DNA from: Octopus bimaculoides
Lineage: Eukaryota
Assembly: GCF_001194135.2 (NCBI RefSeq)
Contig: NC_068981.1
Span: 118,261,888 to 118,304,639, forward strand
DNA: 42,752 nt
Direction: 5' to 3'
Shown: positions 2,388-42,752 of the stretch, piece after piece
Numbering within the stretch: position 1 is the first letter of the stretch
Layout: every line of letters begins with the position of its first letter
Position numbers and translations under genes: made by a program
The notes under the pieces: generated by a model
What the model was told of the DNA's origin: nothing
Database searches by the model: none
The model's input: only the letters and a program-made list of their open reading frames with translations

Positions 2388-2427
2388 ATACATACATACA
2401 TACATACATACATACATACATACATAC
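2388..2427 (+). repeat. (CATA)n microsatellite immediately 5' of R4/Dong-like copy A
   Basis: Directly visible; starts at the gap edge. Confidence 0.95.
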
Positions 2428-2433
2428 TCCTAC

Positions 2434-2843
2434 GCACTTACTCTTCCAGATTACAAGTTTAGTGTATACATGTAGCTATTGGGGTGCTGGAATATGTAAT
2501 ACACTGCCTAAATACCAATCTTCAGAAATTAAGTTTCTCAAAACCAGAAGGGAGAAAGCTAATTCGAATACTACACATCCAATCTATCACTGGAACTGTT
2601 AAAATCTGTAAAACTTTCCAGATGTTTATCATTTAATATATATGAACATATCTTGATATGCAAGTACAAGCATGAGAAAGCATACATAAAACAAAACATA
2701 CAAATATATACATATACATACATACATACATACAAAAATACCCTGTTGACGTTGTTGAATTTCCAGTGAAAAAGCCTTGGATCTAGGTTAGAAATCGCCT
2801 CTTCTCTATTGGAAAGAAATCTTGAAATAAAACTGAATAATGA
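2434..2843 (+). mobile_element. 5'-truncated R4/Dong-like non-LTR retrotransposon, copy A (end of REL endonuclease + 3' UTR)
   Basis: Colinear with 30855-31217 (e.g. ccagattacaagtt, agtttctcaaaaccagaa(g/a)ggagaaagctaattcgaa, ccctgttg, ttggatctaggttagaaa, aagaaatcttgaaat, actgaataatga); roughly 80-85% identity by eye; followed by a (CATA)n tail. Confidence 0.9.
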
Positions 2844-2899
2844 CATGCATACTGCATACATACATACATGCATGCATGTATACGTAGATACATGCATGC

Positions 2900-2930
<31 letters not shown>

Positions 2931-2947
2931 CATACATACATACATAC
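2844..2947 (+). repeat. (CATA)n-type tract between R4/Dong-like copies A and B
   Basis: Directly visible; degenerate at the 5' end, pure at the 3' end. Confidence 0.9.
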
Positions 2948-3375
2948 TTACAGTAGTTGCCCAACAGATATCAGTATAAATCTAAAGTATCCGTGAAGTA
3001 GAAAATACGTACGTTGAACTATTGGGAATTTATAGATATTCCACTTGCACTACAAGTTTAGGTTCATACCAGTAATTACTGAGGCGATTTGATACGAAAC
3101 CAACTGCCTCAACACCGATTTTGAGAAATTGCAATTCTCACAACCGTTATGGAGAAACCAAAGTCGAAGACAAGCCATCAATTATACAGTAAAATATGTA
3201 AAACTTAACTAGTATTTTACAAGTAAGTACATATGGAAAAATACAGACATGCAACTATATGTATGATTAGACATACATAAAACAAAGCATGCATATCTGC
3301 ACACGTAGCGATATCAAATACTTGCACAAGCACGGACATGCATGTGCAACTGCCCTGTTGATATCGTTGAAACTA
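2948..3375 (+). mobile_element. 5'-truncated, more diverged R4/Dong-like copy B (REL domain C-terminus + part of 3' UTR)
   Basis: Translates with stops/frameshifts to SCPTDISINLK..IREVENTYVELLGNL*..HYKFRFIPVITEAI*YETNCLNTDFEKLQFSQP, matching NCPADVNIKLKISERKKTYA*LLINLQLLYPDYKFRFIPVIIGALGCVTHCPNANVEKLGFSKP at 30775-30970; UTR motifs atgcaactatatg and ccctgttg are shared. Confidence 0.8.
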
Positions 3376-5342
3376 CAATAAAATGATAAAGAATATACGC
3401 ATAAGGAATATACACTATCTCTACTGTGATGTGTGATTTCCAGTGTGCGACTAATTTTTACTATTTGCTTCCTTTCTTGTCTCTAATACCATTATTGGTG
3501 TTATATGCCTATGTATATACTCTTTAATAATGATTCAGAGTAGTACATACCGAACCGATGTATATTCTCTTTAGTAATGTTAAGTTTACTTTATTTCAAC
3601 TGTCATTTTTAATGTTTGCTCTACTATCTTATTCCTTGCCTTGTACTTTTTATTGAGTCATATAATTTTTGTTACGCAAATAGATTTTGATAGTGCATTC
3701 CTTTTTAAATCTTCCCAGTCCATAACTTAACAAATGAAATCGGTCGTTTATCATTTATCATGAAAAAATGCACCTTGAATACCTTCAAATTCTATGCGCG
3801 CGCGTGTGTGGTGTGTGAGAGAGACAGAAAGAGAGTGTGTGTGTTGTGCATGTGCGTATGTGTGTGTTGTGCGCGCGTGTGTGTGTTGTGCGCGCGTGTG
3901 CGTGTATGTGGTGTCTGAGGCGTAGAGAGAGTGTGTGTGTGTGTGTGAGTGTGTGCATGTATGTGTGTTTTTATGCATATATTCATAGGTGTGTAAGCTT
4001 TATTTATACCACATGAATGTGATGAATTTGACTACTTGAATTTTTCTTTGTTACAGATCACTAATAACGGGTAAAACACACACACGCACACACACACATT
4101 TTGAAGGAAATATATATGTGTGTATGTATATACGTATGCATATAATATATATACTCAATCTCATATATGTGAGTGTGGATGTATGTGCATACGTATATAA
4201 TTATGGATATATGAATATATGTATATATATGTATGTATATATACATATGTATGTATGTATATATATGTGTGTGTGGGTGTGTTTATGTATGTACGTATGT
4301 ATATGCCAAATATACATTGCATGATCACAGAGGAGGTAAAATAGTGGCGAACAAAATTTGCTATGCTTTTTCGATGCCGCCGCCGCTTCAGGCTATTTTA
4401 CAGTTAATTTTATGCTGCTATTGCATAGATGAAAGATGTGTTCTTCCCATTATAATGAATATAGAAACTGTTTTACTGATCAAAAGAAATAGTACCGTAG
4501 CATACACTATAATGTCAAAACAATATTCGAGGCATTCCCTCGTTGTGCAACTTATGTAGTTATCTGTTATTACTTTTTTGTAGTTTAAATTATTTTCAGC
4601 TTTTTTGCTTCAGCAGTGTACCCTGAAACATGATCCTCATATTTTTTGTGTTAAACTATATTTAAGTGCGTCTGTTCATGTGTGTGTATATATACACGTA
4701 ATAGCATACACATAAATGTAATACCATAAATTCCAGTATTCAACTTGATATATTATACTATGTAACTAATTTCATTTTGGATCTGTATTTGTAGGAGATT
4801 GACAAAATGGATGTCATAGAGGCACTATACCTGAATATATCACGTCGGTCTTACGAATAGAATGTCTTAGAGTAGTCTCTGCTCAATCAGAGCTGACGTA
4901 TAGCCAAGCAACAGCAACGTTCGTATTATTTTTTCACCACATACATACAAATGTATAATACGTTTGTTTGCGTATAGTGACATTCAATCTCAAAATTAGA
5001 TTGACCGGACGGTATTAATCTATGAAGACATTTTGGCAATCATATTCACATCTTTTTGAAGCTGTTTATCAAGAACATTATCAAATGTACCCTTTCAAAT
5101 TTTTAGTATAGTTAGCTTGTGCTTTGAAGAGCTGGTGCTGTTTCTAACTAGGTAATTGATAATGTAAATGTTCTCACATTTAGTTATATATTGATATTTA
5201 TACGCGTGCATAAATGTGTATATGTGTTTATCTTAAACATTTGACTGTCAAACCTACTCCAATACTAACATCACAAAACTAATAAACACTTTATGGAACT
5301 CTCCGACATCTGTTTACTGACCGGCGGCTTCTAGTCAGGTCG

Positions 5343-6287: not shown

Positions 6288-6571
6288 GGGAGAATATGAA
6301 TGTATATGTGCGTTTCTAAGTAAGTTTCTGTAAACGTATGTGTGAGGAGAGCGACAGACAGAGGCTGGCAGAGTGGTAGGTAGATAATTAGGCAAACAGA
6401 AGGAGGAATTTTTTTATATCGGATTGGAACAAGACAGAGTGCCGTTTTGCCTTGGGCATTGACCGCAATACTTTCCTCCGTGTGCCACTTTATCAAAGTC
6501 CATTTGCCGAACACTTTGTAGCACATAAAAGGACGCAACAAGAACAACGTAAATTTGAATCTTGATTCACA

Positions 6572-6612
<41 letters not shown>

Positions 6613-7573
6613 ACGCACACGTGCGCGCGCACTCACAAACACACATAAACACACACACGCCCGTGCGCGCACACACACACTCATACACACTTATGTATAA
6701 AAATAAACAATTCAATAAAGAAGCAGATTTAACGTGCTACTGCCATTAATACTTCAGCTGCATACTTTTCGCTGCGGGATATTTTTCTTTATGTAGTACT
6801 TCGTTCATAAGACAACATTTCAGCAGCACTAGTTACGGTTGAGCAACAGTGCGTTTTATAATATTAATTTGAGCACATAATATTTTTGTATATAGTGTCA
6901 GTAATTACATTTCAATGTTAAGATGGAAATTATGACATGAGACATAGAGTCAAAGAGGTAAGTTGAAACGGTGATAAAAAGAGCGCTTAGAGCTCTCGGC
7001 GTAAGTAAATTTCAACGAGTCAGCCGTTTAACTACTTATAAATGACGATGAAGTAAATAGATTGATACTTCGTTTTCACGATAAGTATTCTGTTGTCTGA
7101 TCAAAATACTAACTTGAAAATAGTTCACTATTCCACAAAGTTGTGTAACGTTAACGTAAAGCTGAAGCCAAATAAGTGTGATACAGTGTGAGGTAATACT
7201 CTAGCTGTGAATTAGAGTTACACAGTCCGATCTTTGATTTACGCTTATAGTACATCTTATGGGATTCGCACAATTTCCATCTACGAAGTATCACTAAAAA
7301 CACTGCGGTCGTTCTTAACGAAGAACATTAGAGAACTACTTGATTAAAGAGGTTTATGTTTTATGGTATATCTGTATCTTTGTGTTGGTATGTGTGAACG
7401 TATATAACATTATACTATATCTGCTTTGTTTTGTTGTTTTTATATATCCCACCCACTACCATTAGCATTGTTGCAATACCAAAACAATAGTATAAAACGA
7501 GAACAACGTCTGTACAAGCATGTATACATTTATTTATCAATTTATCTATCTATCTATGTGTGTGTATGTGTGT

Positions 7574-7610
<37 letters not shown>

Positions 7611-7630
7611 CGCGTAGCGGGGAGTGTCTA

Positions 7631-7665
<35 letters not shown>

Positions 7666-9970: not shown

Positions 9971-12267
9971 GCATAACAGCAAAATCACTTCTTAAATTAA
10001 AAAAAAAAATTATACCTGTATATTAAAACATTATTATTTTATCAAAAATATTCATTTCAGAAACTCCGGAAACTGATAATATTCTTGAAATTGTGCCTCG
10101 TATCAAAGTTTTACGGCTGTTATTAAATTATCATTAATGAAAATAGAGGTGAGAAAGCGTGAGAGATTGTTGCAAATGAAAACGGAAAATGTCGCTTGCA
10201 ACAAATTAATATTGTTCATTATTACACAATAAAATCTACTCCGCAGTAAATGCAAGGAATATTTAAATTTGTGAAAAATTAGAGTTCAATAATTGAATAA
10301 ACTTCAGAAATGGAAATTACAGGAAATTTCTTAGAACATGAATTTATAAAAACATTCCAGGCGGTCAAGCCTTTTAGTACTTTTAAATTTTACACACCTT
10401 ATTAATAAATAACTTTCTACATTATAATATAGATGTTATAATTTCCTCAATAATCAGGTGTTACGATGCATCAAGTGCATTTAGTGCGGCTTCTCATACA
10501 AACGAATATTTTGTAAAATGCTCAACTGTTATTTTTCTTTATGTGCATGTGCTAAGGTATATCACTATCAAAGCACTAGATGACTTTGTGACGCGATATT
10601 AAATAGCTGTGTTATTAAACTGCATGCTAAGTACACTTTGAATAGTCACCATAATGCTAAATCATTATGTAATTATTATTTGATTTATGGTGTATAATAT
10701 ATATTGTATAGCCTCATTAATATTATTACTAGTTGTACATTTAACATAGTATGTATCATTTATTCCCTTTTCAGAAGAATTCGTCTAGAAGAGAGTAACT
10801 ATGCATGTGTTTATTGAAAAATCGTACTAAAAGTGAAATATGGAATCAAAATATGGTGTTTTGTACATGTGTGTCTTAAAAGATCAGGGCAGTTTTGATT
10901 TACATATATCCGCTAAGTGTAATAGTTTTTGTCATGTTTACGCTTACGGTTCTCACCAGTCAGTAATAGATTTTTGTGTATGAATGTCACGTCAGAATGG
11001 TTTCCATGTTAAGTATGTTATAACATCATTTGCTGATGTTAAATTTAAAAGTGGAAAACTTACCAAGCGGAATTCCTATTATATGTGTATATTATATGTC
11101 TATATTATATGTCTATATGTCTATATGTCTGCAGAAGATAATTGAGCAAAGAATGTTTTTTAATTGATGATATTCTATAGGAAGGGAGTAATGTTAGAAA
11201 GTATGTTATACTGGGCGAACAGACTAGGCTACAAGCATTCCTCTAGATGAGAGATGATTAAATTATATAGAAAAAGAAACATACTTTATATTGACAGATT
11301 GTTTGTAACAGATGGATTAGAACGACCATATCGAGATTTTACTTATGAAAACAGAAAAAAAGGACATTGTTCAAAATCTCAAAGTACAGCTGGTTATATT
11401 TATCTAGATTGGGTTTCTAATGATTATTTTGATATCATTTTTTTGTAGTATATTTTTCAGTTAGAAATAAAATATCTAATTGGGGATTCCTTGTTCAAGA
11501 AACTTCAAGTGAAGACTCGTGCCTTTGCAAAGATTATAAGTAGCGTTTGCGACTTAATTTTAATTAAGCACCACTATTCTGTCACTGCCATTAGTTTGTA
11601 TTTGGACGTTTTCAATGTAGCCAAAAAACAAGCATTTCGTAATATTCAACTCGTATTTCGTTTAGGAGCAAAGAAGTGATTTATGTACGCATGATCAAGA
11701 GTAACTACGTTACATTTCAATATTATCCAGTACTTATTGTTCTTTACAAAATCCTTGTACATTTACTTTTAATGACTTCCAGTGATCTTGGAGACTACTT
11801 TAGATTTCAGAATGATGTCCTTTCTTCTGTTTCCATCGATACATACACACACAAGATATACACATATACACACATACATAGAAACATACGCATAAACACA
11901 CACGCACGCACAAATACAGGCACACACACACACACATATATGCATACATATATACATATATATGTATATCTATTTATATGCATTTGTGTGTATCTGTGTG
12001 TGTGTGTCGTGTGTGTAATTGTGTGTGCATATACTTAGCTGTGTATGTAATCGTTTGAAGTCGAATGCAGTACGTGGAGACATTTTTTTTATTGCTTATA
12101 CGTCTTTGCTGAACACTTTCTGCTTTAATTGTTGTATCAGTTCTTAAATTCTATGGGAGAATACGTTATTGATTTTTACTGCAATATACGACGAAGAAAA
12201 AAATTTAGCACTAACACACGCGCACGTACGCGCACACATACACATACACCCACACATATACACCACA

Positions 12268-13789: not shown

Positions 13790-15870
13790 CCGAGAAACTA
13801 AGTCTGTGTACCAAGACAAATGCGTGTTTTCAAGTAAAAGAAGACGCAATACCAGTGTTTTAACCAAAAGGAATGGTACCCTTCGCAGCGATGAAGCAGG
13901 TCAATGAAGGACTAGAGAAACTAGAAAATACTGGAGTTATCCAAAAAGTGGAATATTCTAAATGGGCAGCACCAACTGTATATAATAAGAAAAAGAATAA
14001 TAAAATAAATGTGTCTTAAAATGTGCCACTATCTCCAACCTACTCCGGAGGACATTTTTGCGAAATTGAACGGTGGAAAGTTATTTTCTAAATTGGATCT
14101 TTCTGAGGCATACCTACAAATTAGAGGAGACGATGAATGCTCGAAATATTTAACAGTTAAAACATAAAGGATTGTATAATTACAAAAGGTTACCATTTGG
14201 TTTTAAAGTCGCGCCTGCGATTTTTCAACAGATGATGTATGAAATGTTAGCGGAGTGTTTATTCGCAATTCCATATCTAGATGATATACTCTTGAAAAGT
14301 GAATCCAGGGATCAACACGTTGAGCACGCAACACATGTATTTGAAAATAAAATATTAAGGGGGACGGCTTTACCTTGATTGAAGAAATGTATGAATATTT
14401 CATACGGGAAATAAGATATTTAGGACAAGTTATTGACAAGAATGGACGACGACCTGATCTGTCTAGGAACGACGTAATTAAAAATATGCCTCCTTCGATT
14501 GATATAGCAACCTTACAAACATTTTCAGGACTGGTAAATTATAACCAAAATTATATATATATTGTTAGGGCTCCACTAAATAATTTGCTGAAAAGGTATA
14601 TGACATGAAATTGGTCACAGAATCGCCAAAAGGCGTTAGACAAAACTAAAAGAATATTAATATCTGATTTGTCGTTAGCTCAGTGTGACCCTGCAGCAGA
14701 GATGTTTGTTGCTTCAGACGCTTCTGAGTATGGTAGAGGAGCCGTTATACTACATAAATATAAGCATCGTAACATGATGGCGGTGGCTCATGCCTCATGT
14801 TCTCTGATATCAACAGAGAAAAATTATAGTCAAATCGGAAAAGCTCTAGCGATCATTCTTGCAGTAATTTCATAAATTTTTGCACAGTAGGAGTTTTCGT
14901 TTACAGACTGATCACCGACCTTATTACCGATATTTGAGTAAAAAAAAAAGAGTTCCTAGTTATGCTGCCTAATAGGTCACTATTCTGGGTCACGATATTA
15001 TTATAGTACGATTTTAAGTTGGAGGATATTCTATCCAAGAAATTAGGCCATGCAGATTGTCTATCAAGACTGATTTCGAAAAACGCAGAACCATTTGAAG
15101 ATACAGTGATTACCGCTTTACGGGCGGAAAAGAAAATTACAAATGTTTTGTATAACGTCATTCGTGAACTGCCAGTTACATTACCTGAAGTAAAATCAAA
15201 ATCGGAGAGCGATAGATTCGTTATAAAAATGAAAGAAACACTGAAGGCTAAAGGAAATAAAAATATGCGTAACACAAATGGGAGTAATTTCTTACTGTGT
15301 GACAATGTATTGTTGTATGCACAAAGAGTCGTAGTTCCAACGGCACTACAAAAGAGTTTATTAAAGGAATTTCATGTGTCACACAGGGATTTTGCGAATG
15401 AAATCACTAACGAGAATTTACGTATATTGGCCTACAATGGACAGGGACATTGAAGAGTCGTTGAAATCCTGAAATGGTTGTGCCCTTGCAGCCAAGTCAC
15501 CATCGATAAAATGTCAACCGTGGCCTAAAACCAGTAGTATATAGACCAGGTTTTATATAGATTTTGTTGGCCGATCAAATGGCACGTATTACCTGATTGA
15601 AGTAGACAGTTATACTAAGTGGCCGGAAATATGTAGATGAGGGTAACCAACCTCTATGTAACAATACATTTTTTTCATGAACTTTTTGCAAGATATGGTG
15701 TCGCGAACACCATAGCATCCGATAAACGTACGCACTTTACAGCGTATGAGTTTTAAAATCTTTGAAAAATGTACGCAATTGAACACACCTCTACTACGCC
15801 ATATCACCTATGATGAAACGGACAAGCGAAACGGTTCGTGGATACATTTAAAAGAGCATTAAAGAGACCT
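13790..15870 (+). pseudogene. pol: Gypsy pol remnant (RT, RNase H, integrase)
   Basis: SKWAAPTV; PTPEDIFAKLNGGKLFSKLDLSEAYLQI; RLPFGFKVAPAIFQQ; YLDD at 14274-14285; FVASDASEYG (RNase H); LLKEFHVSH; IDFVG...YLIEVDSYTKWPE; NGQA.RFVDTFKRAL (integrase core). Confidence 0.92.
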
Positions 15871-25589: not shown

Positions 25590-27340
25590 AGAAATTCAAT
25601 GGAAACCAGGATTTTTCAAAGCACATTGACTCCTTCGTATGAAAATCCTGCAAGGAGAAAATGGAGTTTATCCAGGATGAAGCGTGTCTAGCAGAATATC
25701 CGAAGATTTATTGTTCTTGTATTACACAAAACGCATACTGAACCAATAAAGTGATAGATTTAAGATAGTGGAATAATATCGGAAAAGATTCGATTAGTGG
25801 ATACTGATAAAAAAATATATGACTGCCAATCGATAGCATCAAACTCATCTTGTGTCAAGCAAGATCTCAATAAGAATATATATATATTCCAGTTTTGTTG
25901 TTGGCAAAAACAAATCTAGTACAAGACATGAAAAAAGTGTCAGAATTTAATATATAAGATAAATACAAAACTTAACCTATTCGTCCACTATGATTGTGTT
26001 AGAAACAAGATTACACCTTGGTGAGCAGGGAAGAAAGTATTTTCAGGATGTACTCAGCAATAGCTAATAAACAAAAACTTGATGTCATACGTGAGGCAGC
26101 ATGGATAGAGCATAGTTACTATGTGGCTTGATTACAAGAATACATTCACTGCAGAAACCGTGAATGCTCCAGATAACATAATCAGTGACGTAGGCAATTT
26201 AGCTTCGGCCACCATCACCAACTTAAATACAAAAAGTTGTTATGGTGTCACTGGTAGTAGTAAGAAGCTCTCAAGAGAGTTTGAACAGTAGATCTTGAGA
26301 GAAGAACCCTCTTCAAAGAAATGTTTCGGCCCTCACTTTATAGGCTCTTAGGTAGCCAAGCTGCATCCATGTCATGACTCTTAAGTACCTGCTAACACTT
26401 TTTAGCCCCTTGGATATCAGAGACTTGTATTATAAGGGTATTTTTAAGACCGAGAAACACGAGGAACTGGAAACATACAACTAAGACATGACTAGTTTGT
26501 GAACGACCTAAATGTGTACACTAGAATTATGACTGGTGCGCGAAGAGGAGCTTTGGTATATTGTGGATAGGTCAAAGGATATCGAGATTGTACAGGCTAA
26601 AGAAATATTTGTGCATTCTTATTGTAATAGAGGAAAACTACAAGCCATTCAACTGACACTTTTATCAATGGCTTAGTATGAGTATTTCTCTGATATCTGA
26701 TGAGGATTGTTATTAACATATAAGGACAGATAAAAATATATCTTCTGACAGAAATTATAAGAGAAATGTAAGCAGGTAATAGAGCACTCAGAAAAAAAAT
26801 ATGTTCTTCAGATCGCTCTTCATATATATGGGTATTCCACAATGATTGCTCTACCTGTATTCTCACAAAATATATGTTAGATGAGTTCCAGGCTTTTGAT
26901 GTTAATCCATGAAAAATGTTAGATCACACTAAAAGTTTCCAATTTAACAGCAATAAAATCAATCTTTACCTGAAAGGAAAACAAGGAAACAAGATTTTAG
27001 AATCAGTTCAAACTGCCTTTTGAATGTAATGTCTTTCGAGGACTTCTACTAACCAAACGGCATCTAGCATAAATGTATGAGAAATAATGTCATCTAAGTT
27101 GAAAGAGTCCTTTTCGGAAAATATTCCCTGGCTGGTGATCAAGTATATACACTCAAGGAAAAGTAAACTAAGATATATGACCAATACATTAGTTCTGACT
27201 GAAGGGATGGCTTTTCAATCGTCACAGTAATAGCATTAAAATATCTAATCCTCAAATGAAATAGGAATATAGGTAAATCTATTAGCTGAAACAACCGATA
27301 CAAATTCCATTGAATTAACACTGAGGATATTACCTTCATT
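25590..27340 (+). mobile_element. Old, heavily decayed R4/Dong-like copy C (RT region; boundaries approximate)
   Basis: Peptide remnants colinear with the younger copy D: GKDSISGY (25781) vs GKDSIVGY; SGCTQQ*LINK...VTMWLDYK (26121) vs GCADQLLTNK...VSMWPGYK; NLNTKS vs KLNTKS; FVNDL (26496, decayed FxDD); DEDCY*HIRTDKNIS vs DEECYWYLGVDENIS; NLYLKGKQG vs RPYLNLKQG. Confidence 0.75.
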
Positions 27341-27364
27341 AAAAATATGTTCACAACATATTTA

Positions 27365-27465
27365 CATGCATACATACAAACATACATACATACATGCATG
27401 CATGCATACATACATACATACATACATACATACATACATACATACATACATACGTACATACATAC
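27365..27465 (+). repeat. (CATA)n tract between R4/Dong-like copies C and D
   Basis: Directly visible. Confidence 0.95.
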
Positions 27466-28216
27466 ACGAAACATTCGAAGGGACAAGTTGCGCATTTGGC
27501 GTGGGGAACTATTTACCGAAAATACGATGAATACTATCTCCAACTTTGGATCTACAACTATCAGCCTTGTTAAATAACTTGTTAATCTCCAGATGAATTA
27601 ACGAAGGGAGCCTTTTATTCACGATAGTGGTGATTTTCGATTGAAACTTGAATTTAGCATGAGGACAGTTACTACAAACAACATGGCTGGACACATCATC
27701 AGCAACAACATAATCAAGGAACAGAACGAAAACAACCGCTGAACAGGTAAAAAAAAGTCTTTCTAGCAGTAGTTATAGAAGAAACCGTAACTACAAAGCT
27801 CATTTCTCTAGGAGTTATGAATTGAATAACGATCTATTTAACTGCTACAAAAAAAGCGAAACAAAACCCCGCTGTTGGCTGCATGAATCGATTGAAATCA
27901 TATGGGGACGATCTGCATCCAGAATTAAATCATTTTACTGCGAAGCAAATACGCCAAGAAGCAACATTTGTAGAACATAGAAAGAAGGTTAGTAACTGTA
28001 ACTTTATTAAAAAATCGAAAATTAACCTTCTTCCCAACTCTATAAACAAAAACGAAAACGTGAATGATATAAGACCCCTACGTGGTTTCGCAGCTAGCGA
28101 CATTCAAACAGATTCCATAGTGCCTGCCAGCCAAACTACATTGCTGGCTCAAGTAACTGACCACTGTCCCCCTACTGCGATTATGGTAAATAGCAGGCAA
28201 AACCGCAACGATTATT

Positions 28217-28282
<66 letters not shown>
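28217..28282. repeat. (AGT)n microsatellite inside the copy D ORF, running into a gap
   Basis: Directly visible. Confidence 0.95.
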
Positions 28283-28475
28283 NNNNNNNNNNNNNNNNNN
28301 NNNNNNNNNNNNNNNNNNNNNNNNNNNNNNNNNNNNNNNNNNNNNNNNNNNNNNNNNNNNNNNNNNNNNNNNNNNNNNNNNNNNNNNNNNNNNNNNNNNN
28401 NNNNNNNNNNNNNNNNNNNNNNNNNNNNNNNNNNNNNNNNNNNNNAAAATAACAAAGAAAGTACCATCATGGGTT

Positions 28476-30000
28476 TTGAAGACAGAGAAAAACATAACTG
28501 GTTTACGGAAGACTATCAGTCATGTAATGATGATTATTGCGTGCAAACAAGTAAATTATTATAGGTACCACCAACAGAAATTAAAGAAGGAGATAGAAAT
28601 GGTGTTTGGAGACAGCAAAAAGAGGACACTCACTTGCAAACTGATTAGACTCAAGCAGGAGCTAAAAGCTGTCAGTGAAAAACTCCGACATCAGAAGAGA
28701 ATAACCGAGAAAAGAACAATAAACAGATAAATAGAAAAATCTAACCGGAACCAAGCAGCAGTATACAGAGACATGAGAGGAGAAACATTAAACATCACGG
28801 AAGCTCCTTCACGAAAAGACATAGACACCTCCTGGAAGAAAATCTGGAGTGAAGAGAAGGAATTTAACCAAGATGCTCTGCGGCTGGAAGAAGTCCGAAA
28901 AAGTTATTGCTCCTGCAAGACATACAACATTGTTGGTGAAACTCTTGCAACTGTGATCCAGAAACTCCAGGATGGAAAAGCACCTGGAAAAGACTCGATT
29001 GTTGGATATTAGTACAAGAAGCTAACATTCTACTGACCATATCTTATCAATGTGTACCAGCAACATTTTATTGGGAACAGTAGCATACCGAACTGGTTAG
29101 CTCTGGCAGAGACAAAATTGATCCTCAAATGCTGAACCACCCACATGGCAAAAAAAACTACCGGCCAATTGCATGCCAGAAGTTGATGTATAAGATATAT
29201 AAAGCATGTTTAAACCTTTTCCTCCAGGACCATTGTGAAACCAATAACATTATCACAGCAGATCAATCAGCTGTGAAGAAGGGAGTCTGGGGATGTGCCG
29301 ATCAGTTGTTAACCAACAAAACTGTGATCTCAGAGGTGCGAGAGCATAGGAAGAACCTAGTTTCAATGTGGCCAGGGTACAAGGAAGCCTTTGACTCTGT
29401 TCCCCACTCATGGATGCTAGAAGCCCTTCATCTTGCTAAAATTCCAGTGAGAATAATCAAAGCCACAGCTGACTTGCCTTCATCGTGGGTCACCATCTTG
29501 AAATTAAACACAAAGAGTGAATGTATTATCACCGATAGAATACAGTGTCGCAAAGGCATATTAAAAGGAGACAGCCTCTCTGTGATGTTGTTTATACTTT
29601 CTGTAATGCCCTTGACATTCATGTTAAGGAAGTCTGAAGGATATCTCATTGGTTCACCAGGAAAGAGAAATACCAAAATTACACACTGTTTCTTTATGCA
29701 AAGAATATGCATGAGATGAAAAAGGTCCTTGACCTAGTTACAGTATTCTCAAAGGATGTAGGATTGGAGTTTGGTCAGGATAAGTGTTGTTATATGGTTG
29801 TGAAAAGGGGGAAAACTATAAACCAGACTAGTAACATCTCCATCAATGATTTGACGGCTTCCCCTGTATCAGACGAGGAATGTTACTGGTATCTAGGGGT
29901 GGATGAAAATATATCTTACAATATCACCTGTTACAAAACACGTGTCACTAAAGAATATTACAGCCGAATAAAGAACATTTGAACCTCAGAACTCTCTGCA
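28476..30000 (+). pseudogene. Reverse transcriptase region of copy D (ORF fragments 28476-28730, 28773-29012, 29129-29719, 29707-29982)
   Basis: Consecutive ORF-track fragments carry non-LTR RT motifs in order. Confidence 0.9.
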
Positions 30001-30539
30001 TTCAATAAAGCAATGGCCTACAATGCGTTTGCAGTGCCAGTACTCTACCAACATTTAGATCCGAGCCATTGATCTGAAAACCCGAAAAATACTAACAAGC
30101 ACACATAATTTCCACATAAACAGGAACGTAGACCGCCCCTACCTAAACCTAAAACAAGGCAGAACACACTTATGTCAAAGTGCATCCCTTGACCACGTTT
30201 GCATGCATGAGGCTGATAACATCATAAGATTTTGAAGACAGCTCATTAAGCAACACTCTTTGTCTGATAACCTAGAATACATGCCCAAAGAAGTCGCACG
30301 AGTCTACCACAACGTATTATCAGATGAAAGGATGAGCCTATATGAGCAGAAGACTATACATGGATATGTTAGTAGAAAGCTCCGTAATGATAGTAATATA
30401 GATCATCAAAGCGGTTTATCATGAACGAATAGCTTGATTACTACTTCCCACTTTGAAGGGTATGCGTTTGCAATCCAGCTACAGGAAATATCAGCCAAGT
30501 ACCTGATGCTCAAAAGGAATAGAGATGCAAGTAAAGCCG

Positions 30540-31020
30540 TAAAGTGTGACAACCGATTCAAACTTTGTGGAGTTCACATTGAAGATATCACCCACAGCAT
30601 AAGCAGTTCTCCGAAAATGTCATCACGGTAAAACCTACGATATGGTAGAAGCGATAGCCACTCATAATAATAAGGAATACAGCTGGAATGTCCCATTGAA
30701 GACCTCAATAAAATGTAAGCACAACAGACCTGATACAATGATTTGTGATAGAGAAGTAGAGAAGAAAAACTGTGGAAACTGCCCAGCGGATGTTAACATA
30801 AAGCTGAAGATCAGTGAAAGAAAGAAAACCTATGCTTAACTATTGATAAATCTGCAGTTACTCTATCCAGATTACAAGTTCAGGTTTATACCTGTAATTA
30901 TTGGGGCCCTGGGATGTGTAACACACTGCCCAAATGCCAATGTTGAGAAATTAGGTTTCTCAAAACCAGAAAGGAGAAAGCTAATTCGAAGACTACAGAT
31001 CCAATCCATCACTGGATGGA
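30540..31020 (+). pseudogene. Zinc knuckle + restriction-like (PD-D/ExK) endonuclease of copy D
   Basis: KCDNRFKLCGVHIEDITH; WNVPLKTSIKCKHNRPDTMICDRE; CPADVNI; IPVIIGALG. Confidence 0.8.
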
Positions 31021-31217
31021 TATATATGAGCATGTCTAGATATGCAACTATATGGATGAGCATACATACGTAAAACATACAAATCTGCACATACATACAT
31101 ACATAAATACATACCCTGTTGTTGATGTTGAAATTCCAATGAAGGAGTCTTGGATCTAGGTTAGAAACTGGTTCTTTCTCTATTGGCAAGAAATCTTGAA
31201 ATCAACTGAATAATGAA

Positions 31218-31262
31218 ATACATACATACATACATACATACGTACATATATACATACATACA
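31218..31262 (+). repeat. (CATA)n 3' tail/flank of copy D
   Basis: Directly visible; begins at the position equivalent to the tail of copy A (after actgaataatga). Confidence 0.9.
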
Positions 31263-32420
31263 TGTATATATAACTAACTAGTTTATATAGTGGACATTCC
31301 AATGGACGACCTTATTTGCGAAGTAAAACAATCTCTTGCTCGACATATATATTAAATACATACGATGAGAAATATAAAATGCATTATCGATGACCTATTC
31401 ATCTAAGTAATAATGTCATGATTATTTATTTAGATATAAATCCTATTTAGTAATAAAACATCCTCACAATATTATCCAATGCTATTTCTTATAGAACACG
31501 ATACTGTACAAATTTCCAAAGTAGGTCTAATAAAGGAGCAATAATATTCATTCAACGTTACAATTTCATTCAGAGACGGAATGACTAAAGCGAGAGAGTT
31601 TCTTGTGTATACAGGGTATAATTTACATCTGAATATTTCCTGAACTTTATGTTTCTCCCATATTATATTTCATATATCTCAAATAATGACTGAAGAATTA
31701 TGTTAGATGCAAATGTTTGTTATGTACTGCTTTTCTGTTTAGCCTATTTGCATCTCATACGCATTTTATTGTACTTAACAGTTCTTGTAACAGCTCAGAC
31801 ATGATGCATTTAACTGCTCACTTGTTTGTAATAAGCTGTTCCGGTATATGAGAATAAATTTAAGACACCTTTCTGAAATGCAATAAATGGTCGTTATAAA
31901 CTAATTTGTATTCGTTGGTTATTTGAAGACTGTCCACCAAAAATATCCAAGAACATAGAACAAGCTGGCAACAAAATTTAAAGAGAATAATATGTTGAAA
32001 CCGCTAATATACATTACTATTATTCATAATAAAAAGTGGAGTAAAATTCCTTTTACACTGTAAATCATACATTTCTTACAAACACATATTGAACAGAAAG
32101 AAAATTCACGAACTTTATGCACACCACATGGCTAACATTCTCATTGCGTGTAGCAGCCACATAATCTCAATGTTTCACTGTTCTTCTCAAATGCCTACTT
32201 CAGAAATGTCAAATCCAACTACACCTTGCATATAGGTGGCAAGACATCACTATTTATTTCCCATTGTAAACACGAGACAAAGAAAATATATTAATGACTA
32301 AAAATTACTAAATACTACACGGGATGGTTTAGATCACTGGTGATCTAAACGAATAGGTACGCTGAGTAAGCGCTATAGTTGGTCGTTCATTAGGGTCTAA
32401 GTTCACAGCTGAGGCGGGAT

Positions 32421-39070: not shown

Positions 39071-39812
39071 ATCTATTTGTAAGAATGTGTGTATGCCGTA
39101 CGTATGTTGTATGTATGTATATTATGACTTCGTGCACATATTTGTTACATATTCACATACTTTTACTAAAAGATACACCACCAAACACCCACATACAAAC
39201 AGAATAGATCATAAGCATTTAAAATAGATAAATATATAAAAATGTAATATAACGATCCATAAAGTGATGTAACAGAGATTCAGCGGCATGAAGGCGCCCT
39301 AGAATCATGACCAAACGTCACTTTCAAATTACATACTCTGTCTTCAGCCCAGTGTCAGACTATATAGCCATGCAACATTAATAATACTTATAATTGTTTT
39401 AAGAGATGAGAAAGTATAATCGAATCTAATTTCACATTATCCCTGCCAAAGGACATTTCAAAAAAAATCTTGAAGATATACTTGAAGTGAAAAAGCCCCA
39501 TACTGAACCTTACATGCCTCATACTATCTCTTTCGCAAGAATCATGAGAGCGATAATTAAAGAAGTGCCAGGATCTACACAAAGATATGCTTTACATCCA
39601 GATCCGTCTTACATGGAAAGATTTGTATTTCGTGTAATTCCACAAATCAACCGTAACACTAAGTGAATGCAAGCAAAATGATTGGTCTCCCTCACTCTCT
39701 GATTTTTGGATAAATCCAGTTGATCGTGATTTTCCATGTTTGTAGAGCTTATTCTAAATTGTAACCTCTGGAACTCTGCCAAGATAGACACATAGTGACA
39801 TTAATGATGATG

Positions 39813-39813
<1 letters not shown>

Positions 39814-39881
<68 letters not shown>
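39814..39881. repeat. (TAA)n microsatellite
   Basis: Directly visible. Confidence 0.97.
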
Positions 39882-40944: not shown

Positions 40945-42752
40945 TAATTGCAGTCCTTAGCGATGTCCGGTTCCCAAACGAAGGCATCCTGAAAGAGCAT
41001 GGTGCCGAATACACCCTATATATTGGTCAGGCAAATTCCCATCAGAATGACTCTTTCAGGTTTCGGCTTCATGATAAAGAATTCAATCGCACCCAAGCTG
41101 GAAACCCTACCAGAAGGCCACTTTGACCGCATTATTTTCATGTGCCTCCCTCTGAAAAACAAGCAGCATGTCACGATCTTTACTGTTTACTCCCCGACTC
41201 TCCAAGCAGACCCAGCAGAGAAGGACAAGTTCTACTCAGACCTGTGCAGAATCTATCAGGGAACTCCCGTCGATTATAATGTCATAATCCTAGGAAATTT
41301 CAACGCCAGAGTGGGTCGAGATTCGGAAACCTGGATAGGACTCCTCAGAAATCATGTGGTTGGGAACTGCAACGACGATGGGCGCCTGTTGCATGCGTTT
41401 TGCATTGAAAATCAGCTCGTCATCACCATTACCATTTTCCAGCAAAGAGCGTCTGAAAACAACTTGGATGCATCCCCGGTCAAATCACTGGTAGTTCCCT
41501 GACTACGTTCTAGTGCACCAGTATGACGTTACGCAAACCAGAGTGATGTCTAGCGCAGAATACCATAATGACCATCGATAGTCTTTTGCAAACTCAAACC
41601 CCATTCAAGCCCAAACCCAAAAAGAGAGGATCGGCCAACAAGAAAATCAAGCCTAGCGGTCTGCAGCTAAACGAAGGGAAAGTAAACTTCCAGCCAGGCG
41701 TACAGGGAAAGCTTGATTAATCCAATTGCCCCCTCAGATCCCTCTCCAGAAATCCTGTAGAAACAACTGAAAACCGCCAGCCTACAGACCTCTGCAGAAA
41801 TCCATGGGTTTACGAAGGAACATAACAAGGATGTACTAATCCAAGAATTGGTAAAGAAGGAAAGTTCTCCCCACCAATTACACCTGGCACAACCATGCTG
41901 ACCCGAGAAGAAAGCGGCCTTTCACCAAGCCTGCAGCACAAACTCCGTGAAGTCCAGTGCGAGTGGTGGACTAACCTTCTACGAAACTCTCAAGGCATTT
42001 TACTGCCCAACACATCAAGTCCATAGTCTCCTGCGCAGCTCAGACGGCCAGGCGCTTCTCGCAGACAAGCATCCATCCTCAACCACTGGTCGGAATACAT
42101 TTAGTCTCTCTTCAGAGCAAACTGAGTTGTCCAGGAAAATGCAATCCTCCCCATCAAGCAATTACTAGTCAGAATGGAACCCGATGAGTCTCCATCACTA
42201 GAAGAGACTACAGTTGCCATTGGCTGGTTGAAGAGTAGAAAGGGAACAGGAGTCGATGGCATACCACCATACCACCAGAGATATGGAAGCATTGGGATTC
42301 TGTCTTACATACTAAACTCCACGTGCTCTTTGTTGCATGCTGGGAACGGAGCAAGCTGCTACGAGATCTCTGCGATGCTGTCATCATCACACTGTACAAA
42401 AACAAAGGGGAAATGTCAGACAGCTCAAACTACCGGCGGATCACACTGCTTTCTAGTGCAGAAAAAGTTCTAGGGAGTTTACTCCTCAACAGGATTGTTC
42501 TCTCCATCGCCGAAAATCATCTACAAGAGAACCTATGTGGTTTCAGAGCCAACAGGGGCACAACAGATATGGTTTTCGTTCTCAGGCAGCTCCAAGAAAA
42601 GTGCCGGGAGGAAAACAGAACTTTAAGCAACATTTGTCCATCTAACAACAGCGTTCGACACTATGAGCAGAAAAAGGCTGTAGCAGATCCTAAACCGACT
42701 CGGCTTTTCCCCAAAATTCAAACCATGATCACCCAGCTTCAAGAAGACCAAC
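40945..42752 (+). mobile_element. RTE-clade LINE remnant (AP endonuclease + start of RT), continues beyond the window
   Basis: IAVLSDVRF.NEG.LKEHGAEYTLY; FMIKNSIA.KL; VYSPTLQA...KDKFYSDL; IILGNFNARVG; CNDDGRLL.AFC.EN.LVIT; TWMHPRS; then NYRRITLLS, CGFRANRGTTDMVFVLRQLQEKCRE; many frameshifts. Confidence 0.9.

Follow-up and report, generated by a model that had tools for sequence, protein, structure and literature searches.

The question raised by this locus is why copies of a retrotransposon lacking long terminal repeats (non-LTR) that are 5'-truncated at different points should each begin beside the same simple repeat on the same strand. The locus is a stretch of 42,752 nucleotides from Octopus bimaculoides (assembly GCF_001194135.2, contig NC_068981.1, positions 118,261,888 to 118,304,639 of the forward strand), the whole of which is called the window below. 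The window is AT-rich (~28-40% G+C), contains many simple repeats and is broken by seven N gaps, so it was taken to be part of a draft eukaryotic assembly. It holds one near-full-length dead copy of the element (the master copy) and two truncated copies, A and B (Table 1). A first-pass annotation of the sequence had proposed a Dong-like family with a restriction-like endonuclease that cuts (CATA)n/(TATG)n in one fixed orientation, and this proposal finds support in five related loci and in sister lineages from other genomes. Judged from sequence, we give a probability of about 0.85 to the reading that the window contains dead copies of a Dong-type retrotransposon with one open reading frame (ORF), and that (CATA)n/(TATG)n microsatellites are the specific target into which its lineage inserts, in a single orientation. 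What we regard as the decisive support comes from relatives at 40-57% amino-acid identity, mainly outside the window; the window copies themselves are old, dead and ordinary.

The ORF of the master copy is dead, with at least four frameshifts and many stop codons. A stitched read-through of this ORF was used as the query, and the contigs of the relatives were then inspected for repeats at the ends of the elements. Intact relatives of 1149-1162 amino acids share 39-41% identity with the stitched read-through, and the relatives at 40-57% identity that were compared for flanking repeats have intact ORFs of 1149-1158 amino acids. Same-strand (CATA)n was found at both ends of the elements in L002, L029 and L031, and at the 5' end, beside non-element DNA, in L001 and L030. 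The 5' tracts are 55-260 bp long and some of them are compound with other repeats (L029). For the window master copy, L001, L029 and L030, no similarity to the 3' untranslated region (UTR) of the element was detected in the 500 bp that precede the 5' tract, so these four tracts are not recognisable as tails of earlier copies. The first-pass annotation had cautioned that each tract could be the tail of a preceding copy, which applies to the truncated copies of the window, whose 5' tracts are or may be such tails. Scans of viral contigs and prokaryotic genome contigs recovered no relatives.

Repeats of other kinds flank the sister lineages. L003 contains three same-strand copies of a family ~50% identical to P0044, flanked by (ACTT)n, and the (CTTA)18 tail of its second copy adjoins the 5' end of the third. 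A scan of metagenome contigs added five further (ACTT)n-type copies (L004-L008). Two metagenome elements, L035 and L036, carry (AC)n/(CA)n and the element of Coccinella septempunctata (L034) carries (AT)n/(TA)n, which indicates that the range of repeat specificities is wider than two tetranucleotides. The nearest outgroup, with (TAA)n or (TA)n, shows 27-34% amino-acid identity. In a neighbour-joining tree, which was built without bootstrap, was rooted on long interspersed nuclear elements (LINEs) with an apurinic/apyrimidinic (AP) endonuclease and serves as a guide only, the (AC)n elements form a clade and the (CATA)n elements a grade, the clade with (ACTT)n arises from within this grade, and elements with (TAA)n/(TA)n make up the sister clade. 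Repeat type follows the protein tree, and same-strand repeats at both ends are present in several independent families. L003, with (ACTT)n, and L029, with (CATA)n, come from the same assembly (ERZ25878469), and their lineages have 389 and 172 cluster members at 90% identity, respectively; with hundreds of proteins clustering at this level, both lineages were active recently.

The (ACTT)n arrays contain other components as well. A repeat without reverse transcriptase (RT) similarity lies between the (ACTT)n LINE copies (L003:9026-9708, L003 upstream of 4387, and L004 upstream of 401). Its last letters are '...cggcgaataaaa' ('...tatcgaataa' in L004), with (ACTT)n behind them, and it could represent a non-autonomous partner or else a second element making use of this (ACTT)n microsatellite. 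Additionally, two (ACTT)n tracts enclose a perfect (AACG)60 array (L003:9751-9989) shortly upstream of the truncated copy, which makes an unusual compound microsatellite within the transposon array.

The family's single ORF codes first for a putatively Myb-like N-terminal domain, then for RT and a CCHC motif, and lastly for a PD-(D/E)xK restriction-like endonuclease. RVT_1 was the sole Pfam hit, and the R2 proteins in PDB (9nl3, 9dou, 8gh6) could be aligned from the RT through the linker and the CCHC motif (E~1e-28). The assignment of the nuclease is based on the C-x2-C...H-x4-C and P-D...D...K columns, which are invariant in 11 intact relatives. No Exo_endo_phos (AP endonuclease) domain was found, the nuclease being C-terminal and restriction-like, and the AP-endonuclease LINEs among the homologue matches are distant outgroups. 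In the N-termini of the family no Cys/His zinc-finger pattern is visible, and Pfam detected no domain there, including no Myb/SANT hit. The N-terminal domain has the conserved pattern W...E...Y...GYMKRMK.LWD..HP, and comparison of profiles shows homology with its counterpart in the (TAA)n clade (hhalign probability 96.6%, E 5e-10).

Members of R4/Dong combine an RT and a restriction-like endonuclease with a divergent Myb/SANT-like N-terminal domain, lack zinc fingers, and insert into ribosomal DNA (rDNA) or microsatellites; for Dong the insertion site is (TAA)n across most insects, molluscs and cnidarians (PMC7998251). The best reading is that the present family belongs to R4/Dong, a placement suggested by its (TAA)n-flanked insect relatives, which form the sister clade in the neighbour-joining tree, and the shared architecture rather than by a tree with named references. 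Among the homologues retrieved there was no named R4, Dong or HERO sequence. The (TAA)n target of Dong in the strict sense is confined to the outgroup. In the window, a clean (TAA)26.7 tract, the classic Dong target, is present at 39802-39881, and no Dong-like coding sequence is detectable near it with the family hidden Markov model (HMM).

The relatives also share an RNA structure. All (CATA)n and (ACTT)n members, together with the Coccinella relative, have in common a hairpin that lies ~45-70 nt ahead of the tail and can be written RCC-TT-stem-loop-stem-C-GGY. On 11 sequences, eight of its nine pairs show compensatory changes, and 87.8% of the cells are paired, compared with 65% in shuffles (0/500 shuffles match the observed pairing or covariation). 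Versions of the stem-loop slid by 1-3 columns score far lower. By analogy with R2, this stem-loop is the likely handle through which the protein would recognise its own RNA.

From these features we infer the cleavage specificity, the priming by the tail and the order of events as follows. By analogy with R2 and Dong, the protein would bind its own RNA through the conserved 3' UTR stem-loop and nick a (CATA)n tract on its (TATG)n strand. The (CAUA)n tail of the RNA would then pair with the nicked strand and prime reverse transcription, and the second strand would be cut inside the same (CATA)n tract. With both cuts in one tract, (CATA)n would be left on both flanks wherever reverse transcription stops, for full-length and 5'-truncated copies alike. 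Later copies would land in the tails or flanks of earlier ones, giving head-to-tail arrays such as copies A and B in the window and the three copies in L003. Of the possible accounts this is the simplest, and it is the one usually given for LINEs specific for microsatellites.

A self-cleaving ribozyme resembling that of hepatitis delta virus (HDV) has been reported at the 5' end or junction of Dong and R4 (PMC3774820). In our sequences the Rfam search identified no ribozyme, merely repeat-driven microRNA hits of the mir-297/mir-466 type, and a strict HDV-like descriptor of our own found nothing in 13 5' ends, including that of a (TAA)n relative meant as positive control. Several of the 5' ends are GC-rich and well folded. 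Sub-threshold Rfam matches to mir-297 and mir-466-like families occur at 27389-27467 of the window (- strand) and at L001 4455-4623; they stem from the (TATG)n repeat alone and represent artefacts, not microRNA genes.

Within the window, alignment to the master copy confirmed that copy A, copy B and the near-full copy each begin 0-7 nt past a same-strand (CATA)n run, as had been noticed from the letters, and two of the three also end in such a run. The master copy starts at 27466, with zero gap after (TACA)26 at 27363-27466. It is complete at the 5' end, because the family HMM places the N-terminal domain at 27765-28152, and its length is uncertain because of the assembly gap (28283-28445) directly behind (GTA)22. 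This (GTA)22 (28217-28282) lies within the ORF, in a low-complexity linker behind the N-terminal domain. Directly upstream of the (TACA)n tract is an older, decayed relative (25938-27334) without the C-terminal ~140 codons and the 3' UTR. A nested insertion of the master copy inside this older relative was considered and rejected, since the older copy does not continue beyond 31263.

Copy A is 75% identical to master positions 30854-31217, with homology from ~2434, that is, 6-7 nt past (ATAC)10. It retains the coding sequence for the C-terminal 'SITGTVKICKTF' and the 3' UTR stem-loop (2774-2799). For copy B, homology sets in at 2948-2958, directly behind the tract at 2843-2947, with 69-78% identity to the master. 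This copy had been ended at 3375 in the first-pass annotation; it reaches ~3430 instead, where its 3' end is decayed, with no tail and no recognisable stem-loop. The two copies were rightly described as truncated at different points of the ORF: the points are ~85 nt apart, that of B being further upstream. Copies A and B are merely 68% identical to each other and are thus taken as separate old events.

The window has just five perfect (CATA)>=5 tracts, each of them on the + strand and inside or adjoining an element copy. For a random point, the chance of lying no more than 8 nt 3' of such a tract end is P~0.001 per junction, which argues that the junction pattern is real and not due to chance. 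The repeat had earlier been called very common in this genome; in the window it is common merely through the element itself, which may be a main local source of the (CATA)n microsatellite. An internal 3' UTR (CATA)n tract is common to the master copy (31089-31114) and copy A. At 7/8 junctions the 5' tract finishes in ...CATAC or ...CATACA, a weak hint of a fixed cutting phase. No minus-strand copies were found beside the (TATG)n-like tracts at 4202-4305 and 39098-39120.

Several points weigh against insertion into (CATA)n. In the window, the 5' tract of copy B is simply the 3' tail of copy A, the 5' tract of copy A adjoins the N gap at 1711-2387 and may be the tail of an unseen upstream copy, and that of the master copy follows the older decayed relative. 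Each 5' tract in the window could in this way be the tail of an earlier copy, and the window evidence is less independent than at first sight. Among the relatives, L002 and L031 are short metagenome contigs that end in repeats, so tandem arrays are possible there. For most relatives the repeat boundary itself served to define the 5' end. Terminal sequence is common only to L001, L003c and the window copy, with L001 agreeing with the L003 family at 17/21 positions of the 5' end, counted by eye on the alignment, and resembling the 5' end of the master copy more loosely. No empty (uninterrupted) target site was seen among the loci examined. Furthermore, the N-terminal domain is almost identical among the lineages flanked by (CATA)n, (CTTA)n and (CA)n.

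This last point bears on what chooses the microsatellite. We consider it possible, though rather doubtful, that the choice is set mainly by pairing of the RNA 3' tail with the nicked target and less by the protein. Such a role of the tail would fit the near-invariant N-terminal domain, repeat units that are one base apart (CATA and CTTA, CATA and CACA), the mixed CATA/CA tail of the Argonauta element, the presence of two lineages in one genome, and the nesting of the (ACTT)n clade in the (CATA)n grade. If it is true, these elements would be naturally re-targetable site-specific LINEs.

Insertion into (CATA)n has also to be weighed against the view that the element has no target preference at all, its (CATA)n tail coming from slippage of the RT and its arrays from RNA-to-RNA template jumping or local duplication. 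The situation of all three 5' tracts in the window agrees with this view, as does L003, where the truncated copy and the third copy follow tails of other elements, and repeat-tailed LINEs that insert randomly do exist, such as the I element and UnaL2 (PMC3747384). However, the 5' tracts of L001, L029, L030 and the master copy adjoin DNA unlike the element 3' UTR, the divergence between A and B together with a tail on A alone does not fit one event, and the pattern at both ends recurs with four repeat units that follow the phylogeny. We therefore regard the absence of a target preference as improbable. Even less probable is a 5' (CATA)n that the element carries or makes at integration at an arbitrary site (as a transcribed leader, or by second-strand copying of the tail): no pure (CATA)n tract occurs in the window apart from a copy, so that the element could be a source of the microsatellite, and full-length copies always have a tract at the very 5' end, but the truncated copies A, B and L003 copy 2 carry the tract at differing truncation points, contrary to a fixed leader, the varied lengths and partly compound nature of the tracts are as expected of pre-existing microsatellites, and we know of no such mechanism in related elements. 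Both alternatives account for the window but not for the relatives.

Microsatellite-specific LINEs represent a known survival strategy, and specific insertion into (CATA)n can be compared with several described systems. Like Dong of Bombyx mori and Dong-like R4 elements, the present family has a single ORF in which a CCHC motif and a restriction-like endonuclease come after the RT, a divergent, putatively Myb-like domain in place of N-terminal zinc fingers, and one-orientation microsatellite insertion with a 3' tail of the same repeat. The likeness extends to the (TAA)n outgroup, in which L032 is flanked by the repeat on both sides, the N-terminal domain is shared and L034 shows the same 3' UTR stem-loop. 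It differs from Dong in its repeat, which is (CATA)n here and (ACTT)n or (AC)n in the sisters, with amino-acid identity to the (TAA)n group being as low as given above. The 5' HDV-like ribozyme reported for Dong and R4 (PMC3774820) was not detected with Rfam or the strict descriptor. Waldo, of the R1 clade, inserts into (ACAY)n in an orientation-specific manner (PMC3812793), and (ACAT)n is (CATA)n in another phase; however, Waldo has an N-terminal AP-type endonuclease, whereas the element here has a C-terminal restriction-like one and no AP domain. The target common to both is convergence, not membership. R2 aligns over the RT, linker and CCHC motif, and the target-primed mechanism and the recognition of a 3' UTR RNA structure are presumably alike; R2 differs by its N-terminal zinc fingers plus Myb and its single 28S rDNA site, and the element here, flanked as it is by microsatellites, lacks both the zinc fingers and this site. 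Togen, specific for (TG)n in fish, and leech HERO families are likewise LINEs with a restriction-like endonuclease that are reported to be microsatellite-specific (PMC4640811), but, compared by description only, they are placed near NeSL/HERO and not in R4. The (AC)n sister lineage might overlap with such Togen/HERO-type families.

The list of microsatellite LINEs given by Grandi and An includes Waldo on (ACAY)n, Mino on (AC)n, Kibi on (TC)n, Koshi on (TTC)n and Dong on (TAA)n (PMC3812793), to which Kojima and Jurka added Togen on (TG)n and some leech HERO families (PMC4640811). Papers on cephalopod genomes describe LINE/Dong-R4 families as abundant and recently active and do not mention their targets (PMC8967140, PMC13282606, PMC9115989). 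In the searchable literature (TAA)n was the sole microsatellite target given for Dong-type elements, no such element was found on (CATA)n, (ACTT)n or (AC)n, and Repbase or Dfam entries may already note it. The claim of a tetranucleotide target not described before is thus too broad, with Waldo already on (ACAY)n (PMC3812793), and stands for a Dong-type element within that literature. Most likely, what is new is the (CATA)n target in a Dong-type element, the site-specific kind of element being itself known.

A lead of greater interest is how repeat specificities have radiated, and what determines them. The repeat used by closely related lineages is (CATA)n, (ACTT)n, (AC)n, (TA)n or (TAA)n, and the tail matches it in each case. 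These lineages offer a natural series for studying how LINEs with a restriction-like endonuclease pick and change their targets, which bears on the re-aiming of R2-type enzymes for DNA insertion. The results also suggest that many tetranucleotide microsatellites of repeat-rich invertebrate genomes are seeded or lengthened by such elements, and markers based on microsatellites of this kind may lie within transposon arrays.

Table 1. Element copies, repeat tracts and flanking repeats in the window and in related loci.
Locus	Feature	Position	Strand	Remarks
Window	(ATAC)10 tract 5' of copy A	2388-2427	+	starts at edge of assembly gap 1711-2387
Window	Copy A, 5'-truncated	2434-2842	+	last ~70 codons and 3' UTR; by alignment to master
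Window	(CATA)n-rich tract, 105 bp	2843-2947	+	3' tail of copy A and 5' flank of copy B
Window	Copy B, older, 5'-truncated	2948 to ~3430	+	starts at master ~30770
Window	Perfect (CATA)>=5 tracts	2388-2427, 2714-2734, 2901-2947, 27405-27453, 31218-31241	+	
Window	Older, heavily decayed relative	25938-27334	+	collinear with residues 243-717 of stitched protein
Window	(TACA)n tract adjoining master copy 5' end	27347-27465	+	Tandem Repeats Finder: 27363-27466, 26 units
Window	Master copy, near-full-length dead non-LTR retrotransposon	27466-31217	+	
Window	Master copy 5' UTR	~27466-27764	+	~300 nt
Window	Master copy N-terminal, putatively Myb-like domain	27765-28152	+	family HMM
Window	Master copy (GTA)22	28217-28282	+	
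Window	Master copy N gap	28283-28445	+	
Window	Master copy RT	~29130-30050	+	YADD box destroyed (deleted)
Window	Master copy CCHC motif	~30540-30610	+	two Cys gone
Window	Master copy PD-D-K nuclease	~30700-30860	+	PD and D/K positions retained
Window	Master copy 3' UTR	~31020-31217	+	
Window	Master copy 3' UTR stem-loop	31144-31172	+	~45 nt before tail; somewhat degraded
Window	(ATAC)11 3' tail of master copy	31218-31263	+	
L002 (P0044)	5' (ACAT)n; 3' (CATA)n	49-103; 4296-4349	same strand	
L029 (P0049)	5' (TACA)n; 3' (ACAT)n	6505-6767; 10673-10764	same strand	
L031 (P0047)	Repeat at both contig ends		same strand	
L001 (P0045)	165 bp (CATA)n directly before 5' end			contig stops short of tail
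L030 (P0073)	5' (ACAT)n; tail CATA(CA)6CATTCATAC			Argonauta hians
L003 copy 1	Between (ACTT)26 and (CTTA)29			full length
L003 copy 2	Starts right behind (ACTT)n, ends in (CTTA)18			5'-truncated
L006	(CTTA)n at both ends			
L004, L005	(CTTA)n at 5' end			
L007, L008	(CTTA)n at 3' end			
L035	5' (AC)n; (CA)n tail	1-47 (5')		metagenome element
L036	(CA)n tail	3725-3751		metagenome element
L032	Flanked by (TAA)34 and (AAT)41			Diaphorina citri; outgroup
L033	(TAA)n tail			outgroup
L025	5' (TAA)n			outgroup
L034	(AT)n and A23(TA)25	3810-3887 and 7560-7632		Coccinella septempunctata

Remnants of other elements are also present in the window. An ORF of 167 amino acids at 40999-41502 contains the AP-endonuclease-like 'NFNARVG', and a weak RT match to the family HMM occurs at 42284-42628 (E 0.05); the two are probably a fragment of an unrelated AP-endonuclease LINE. 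Another ORF, of 144 amino acids at 15019-15453, contains 'LLKEFHVSH...', which we take to resemble the N-terminal zinc-binding region of retroviral-type integrases, and may presumably be the remnant of an LTR retrotransposon.

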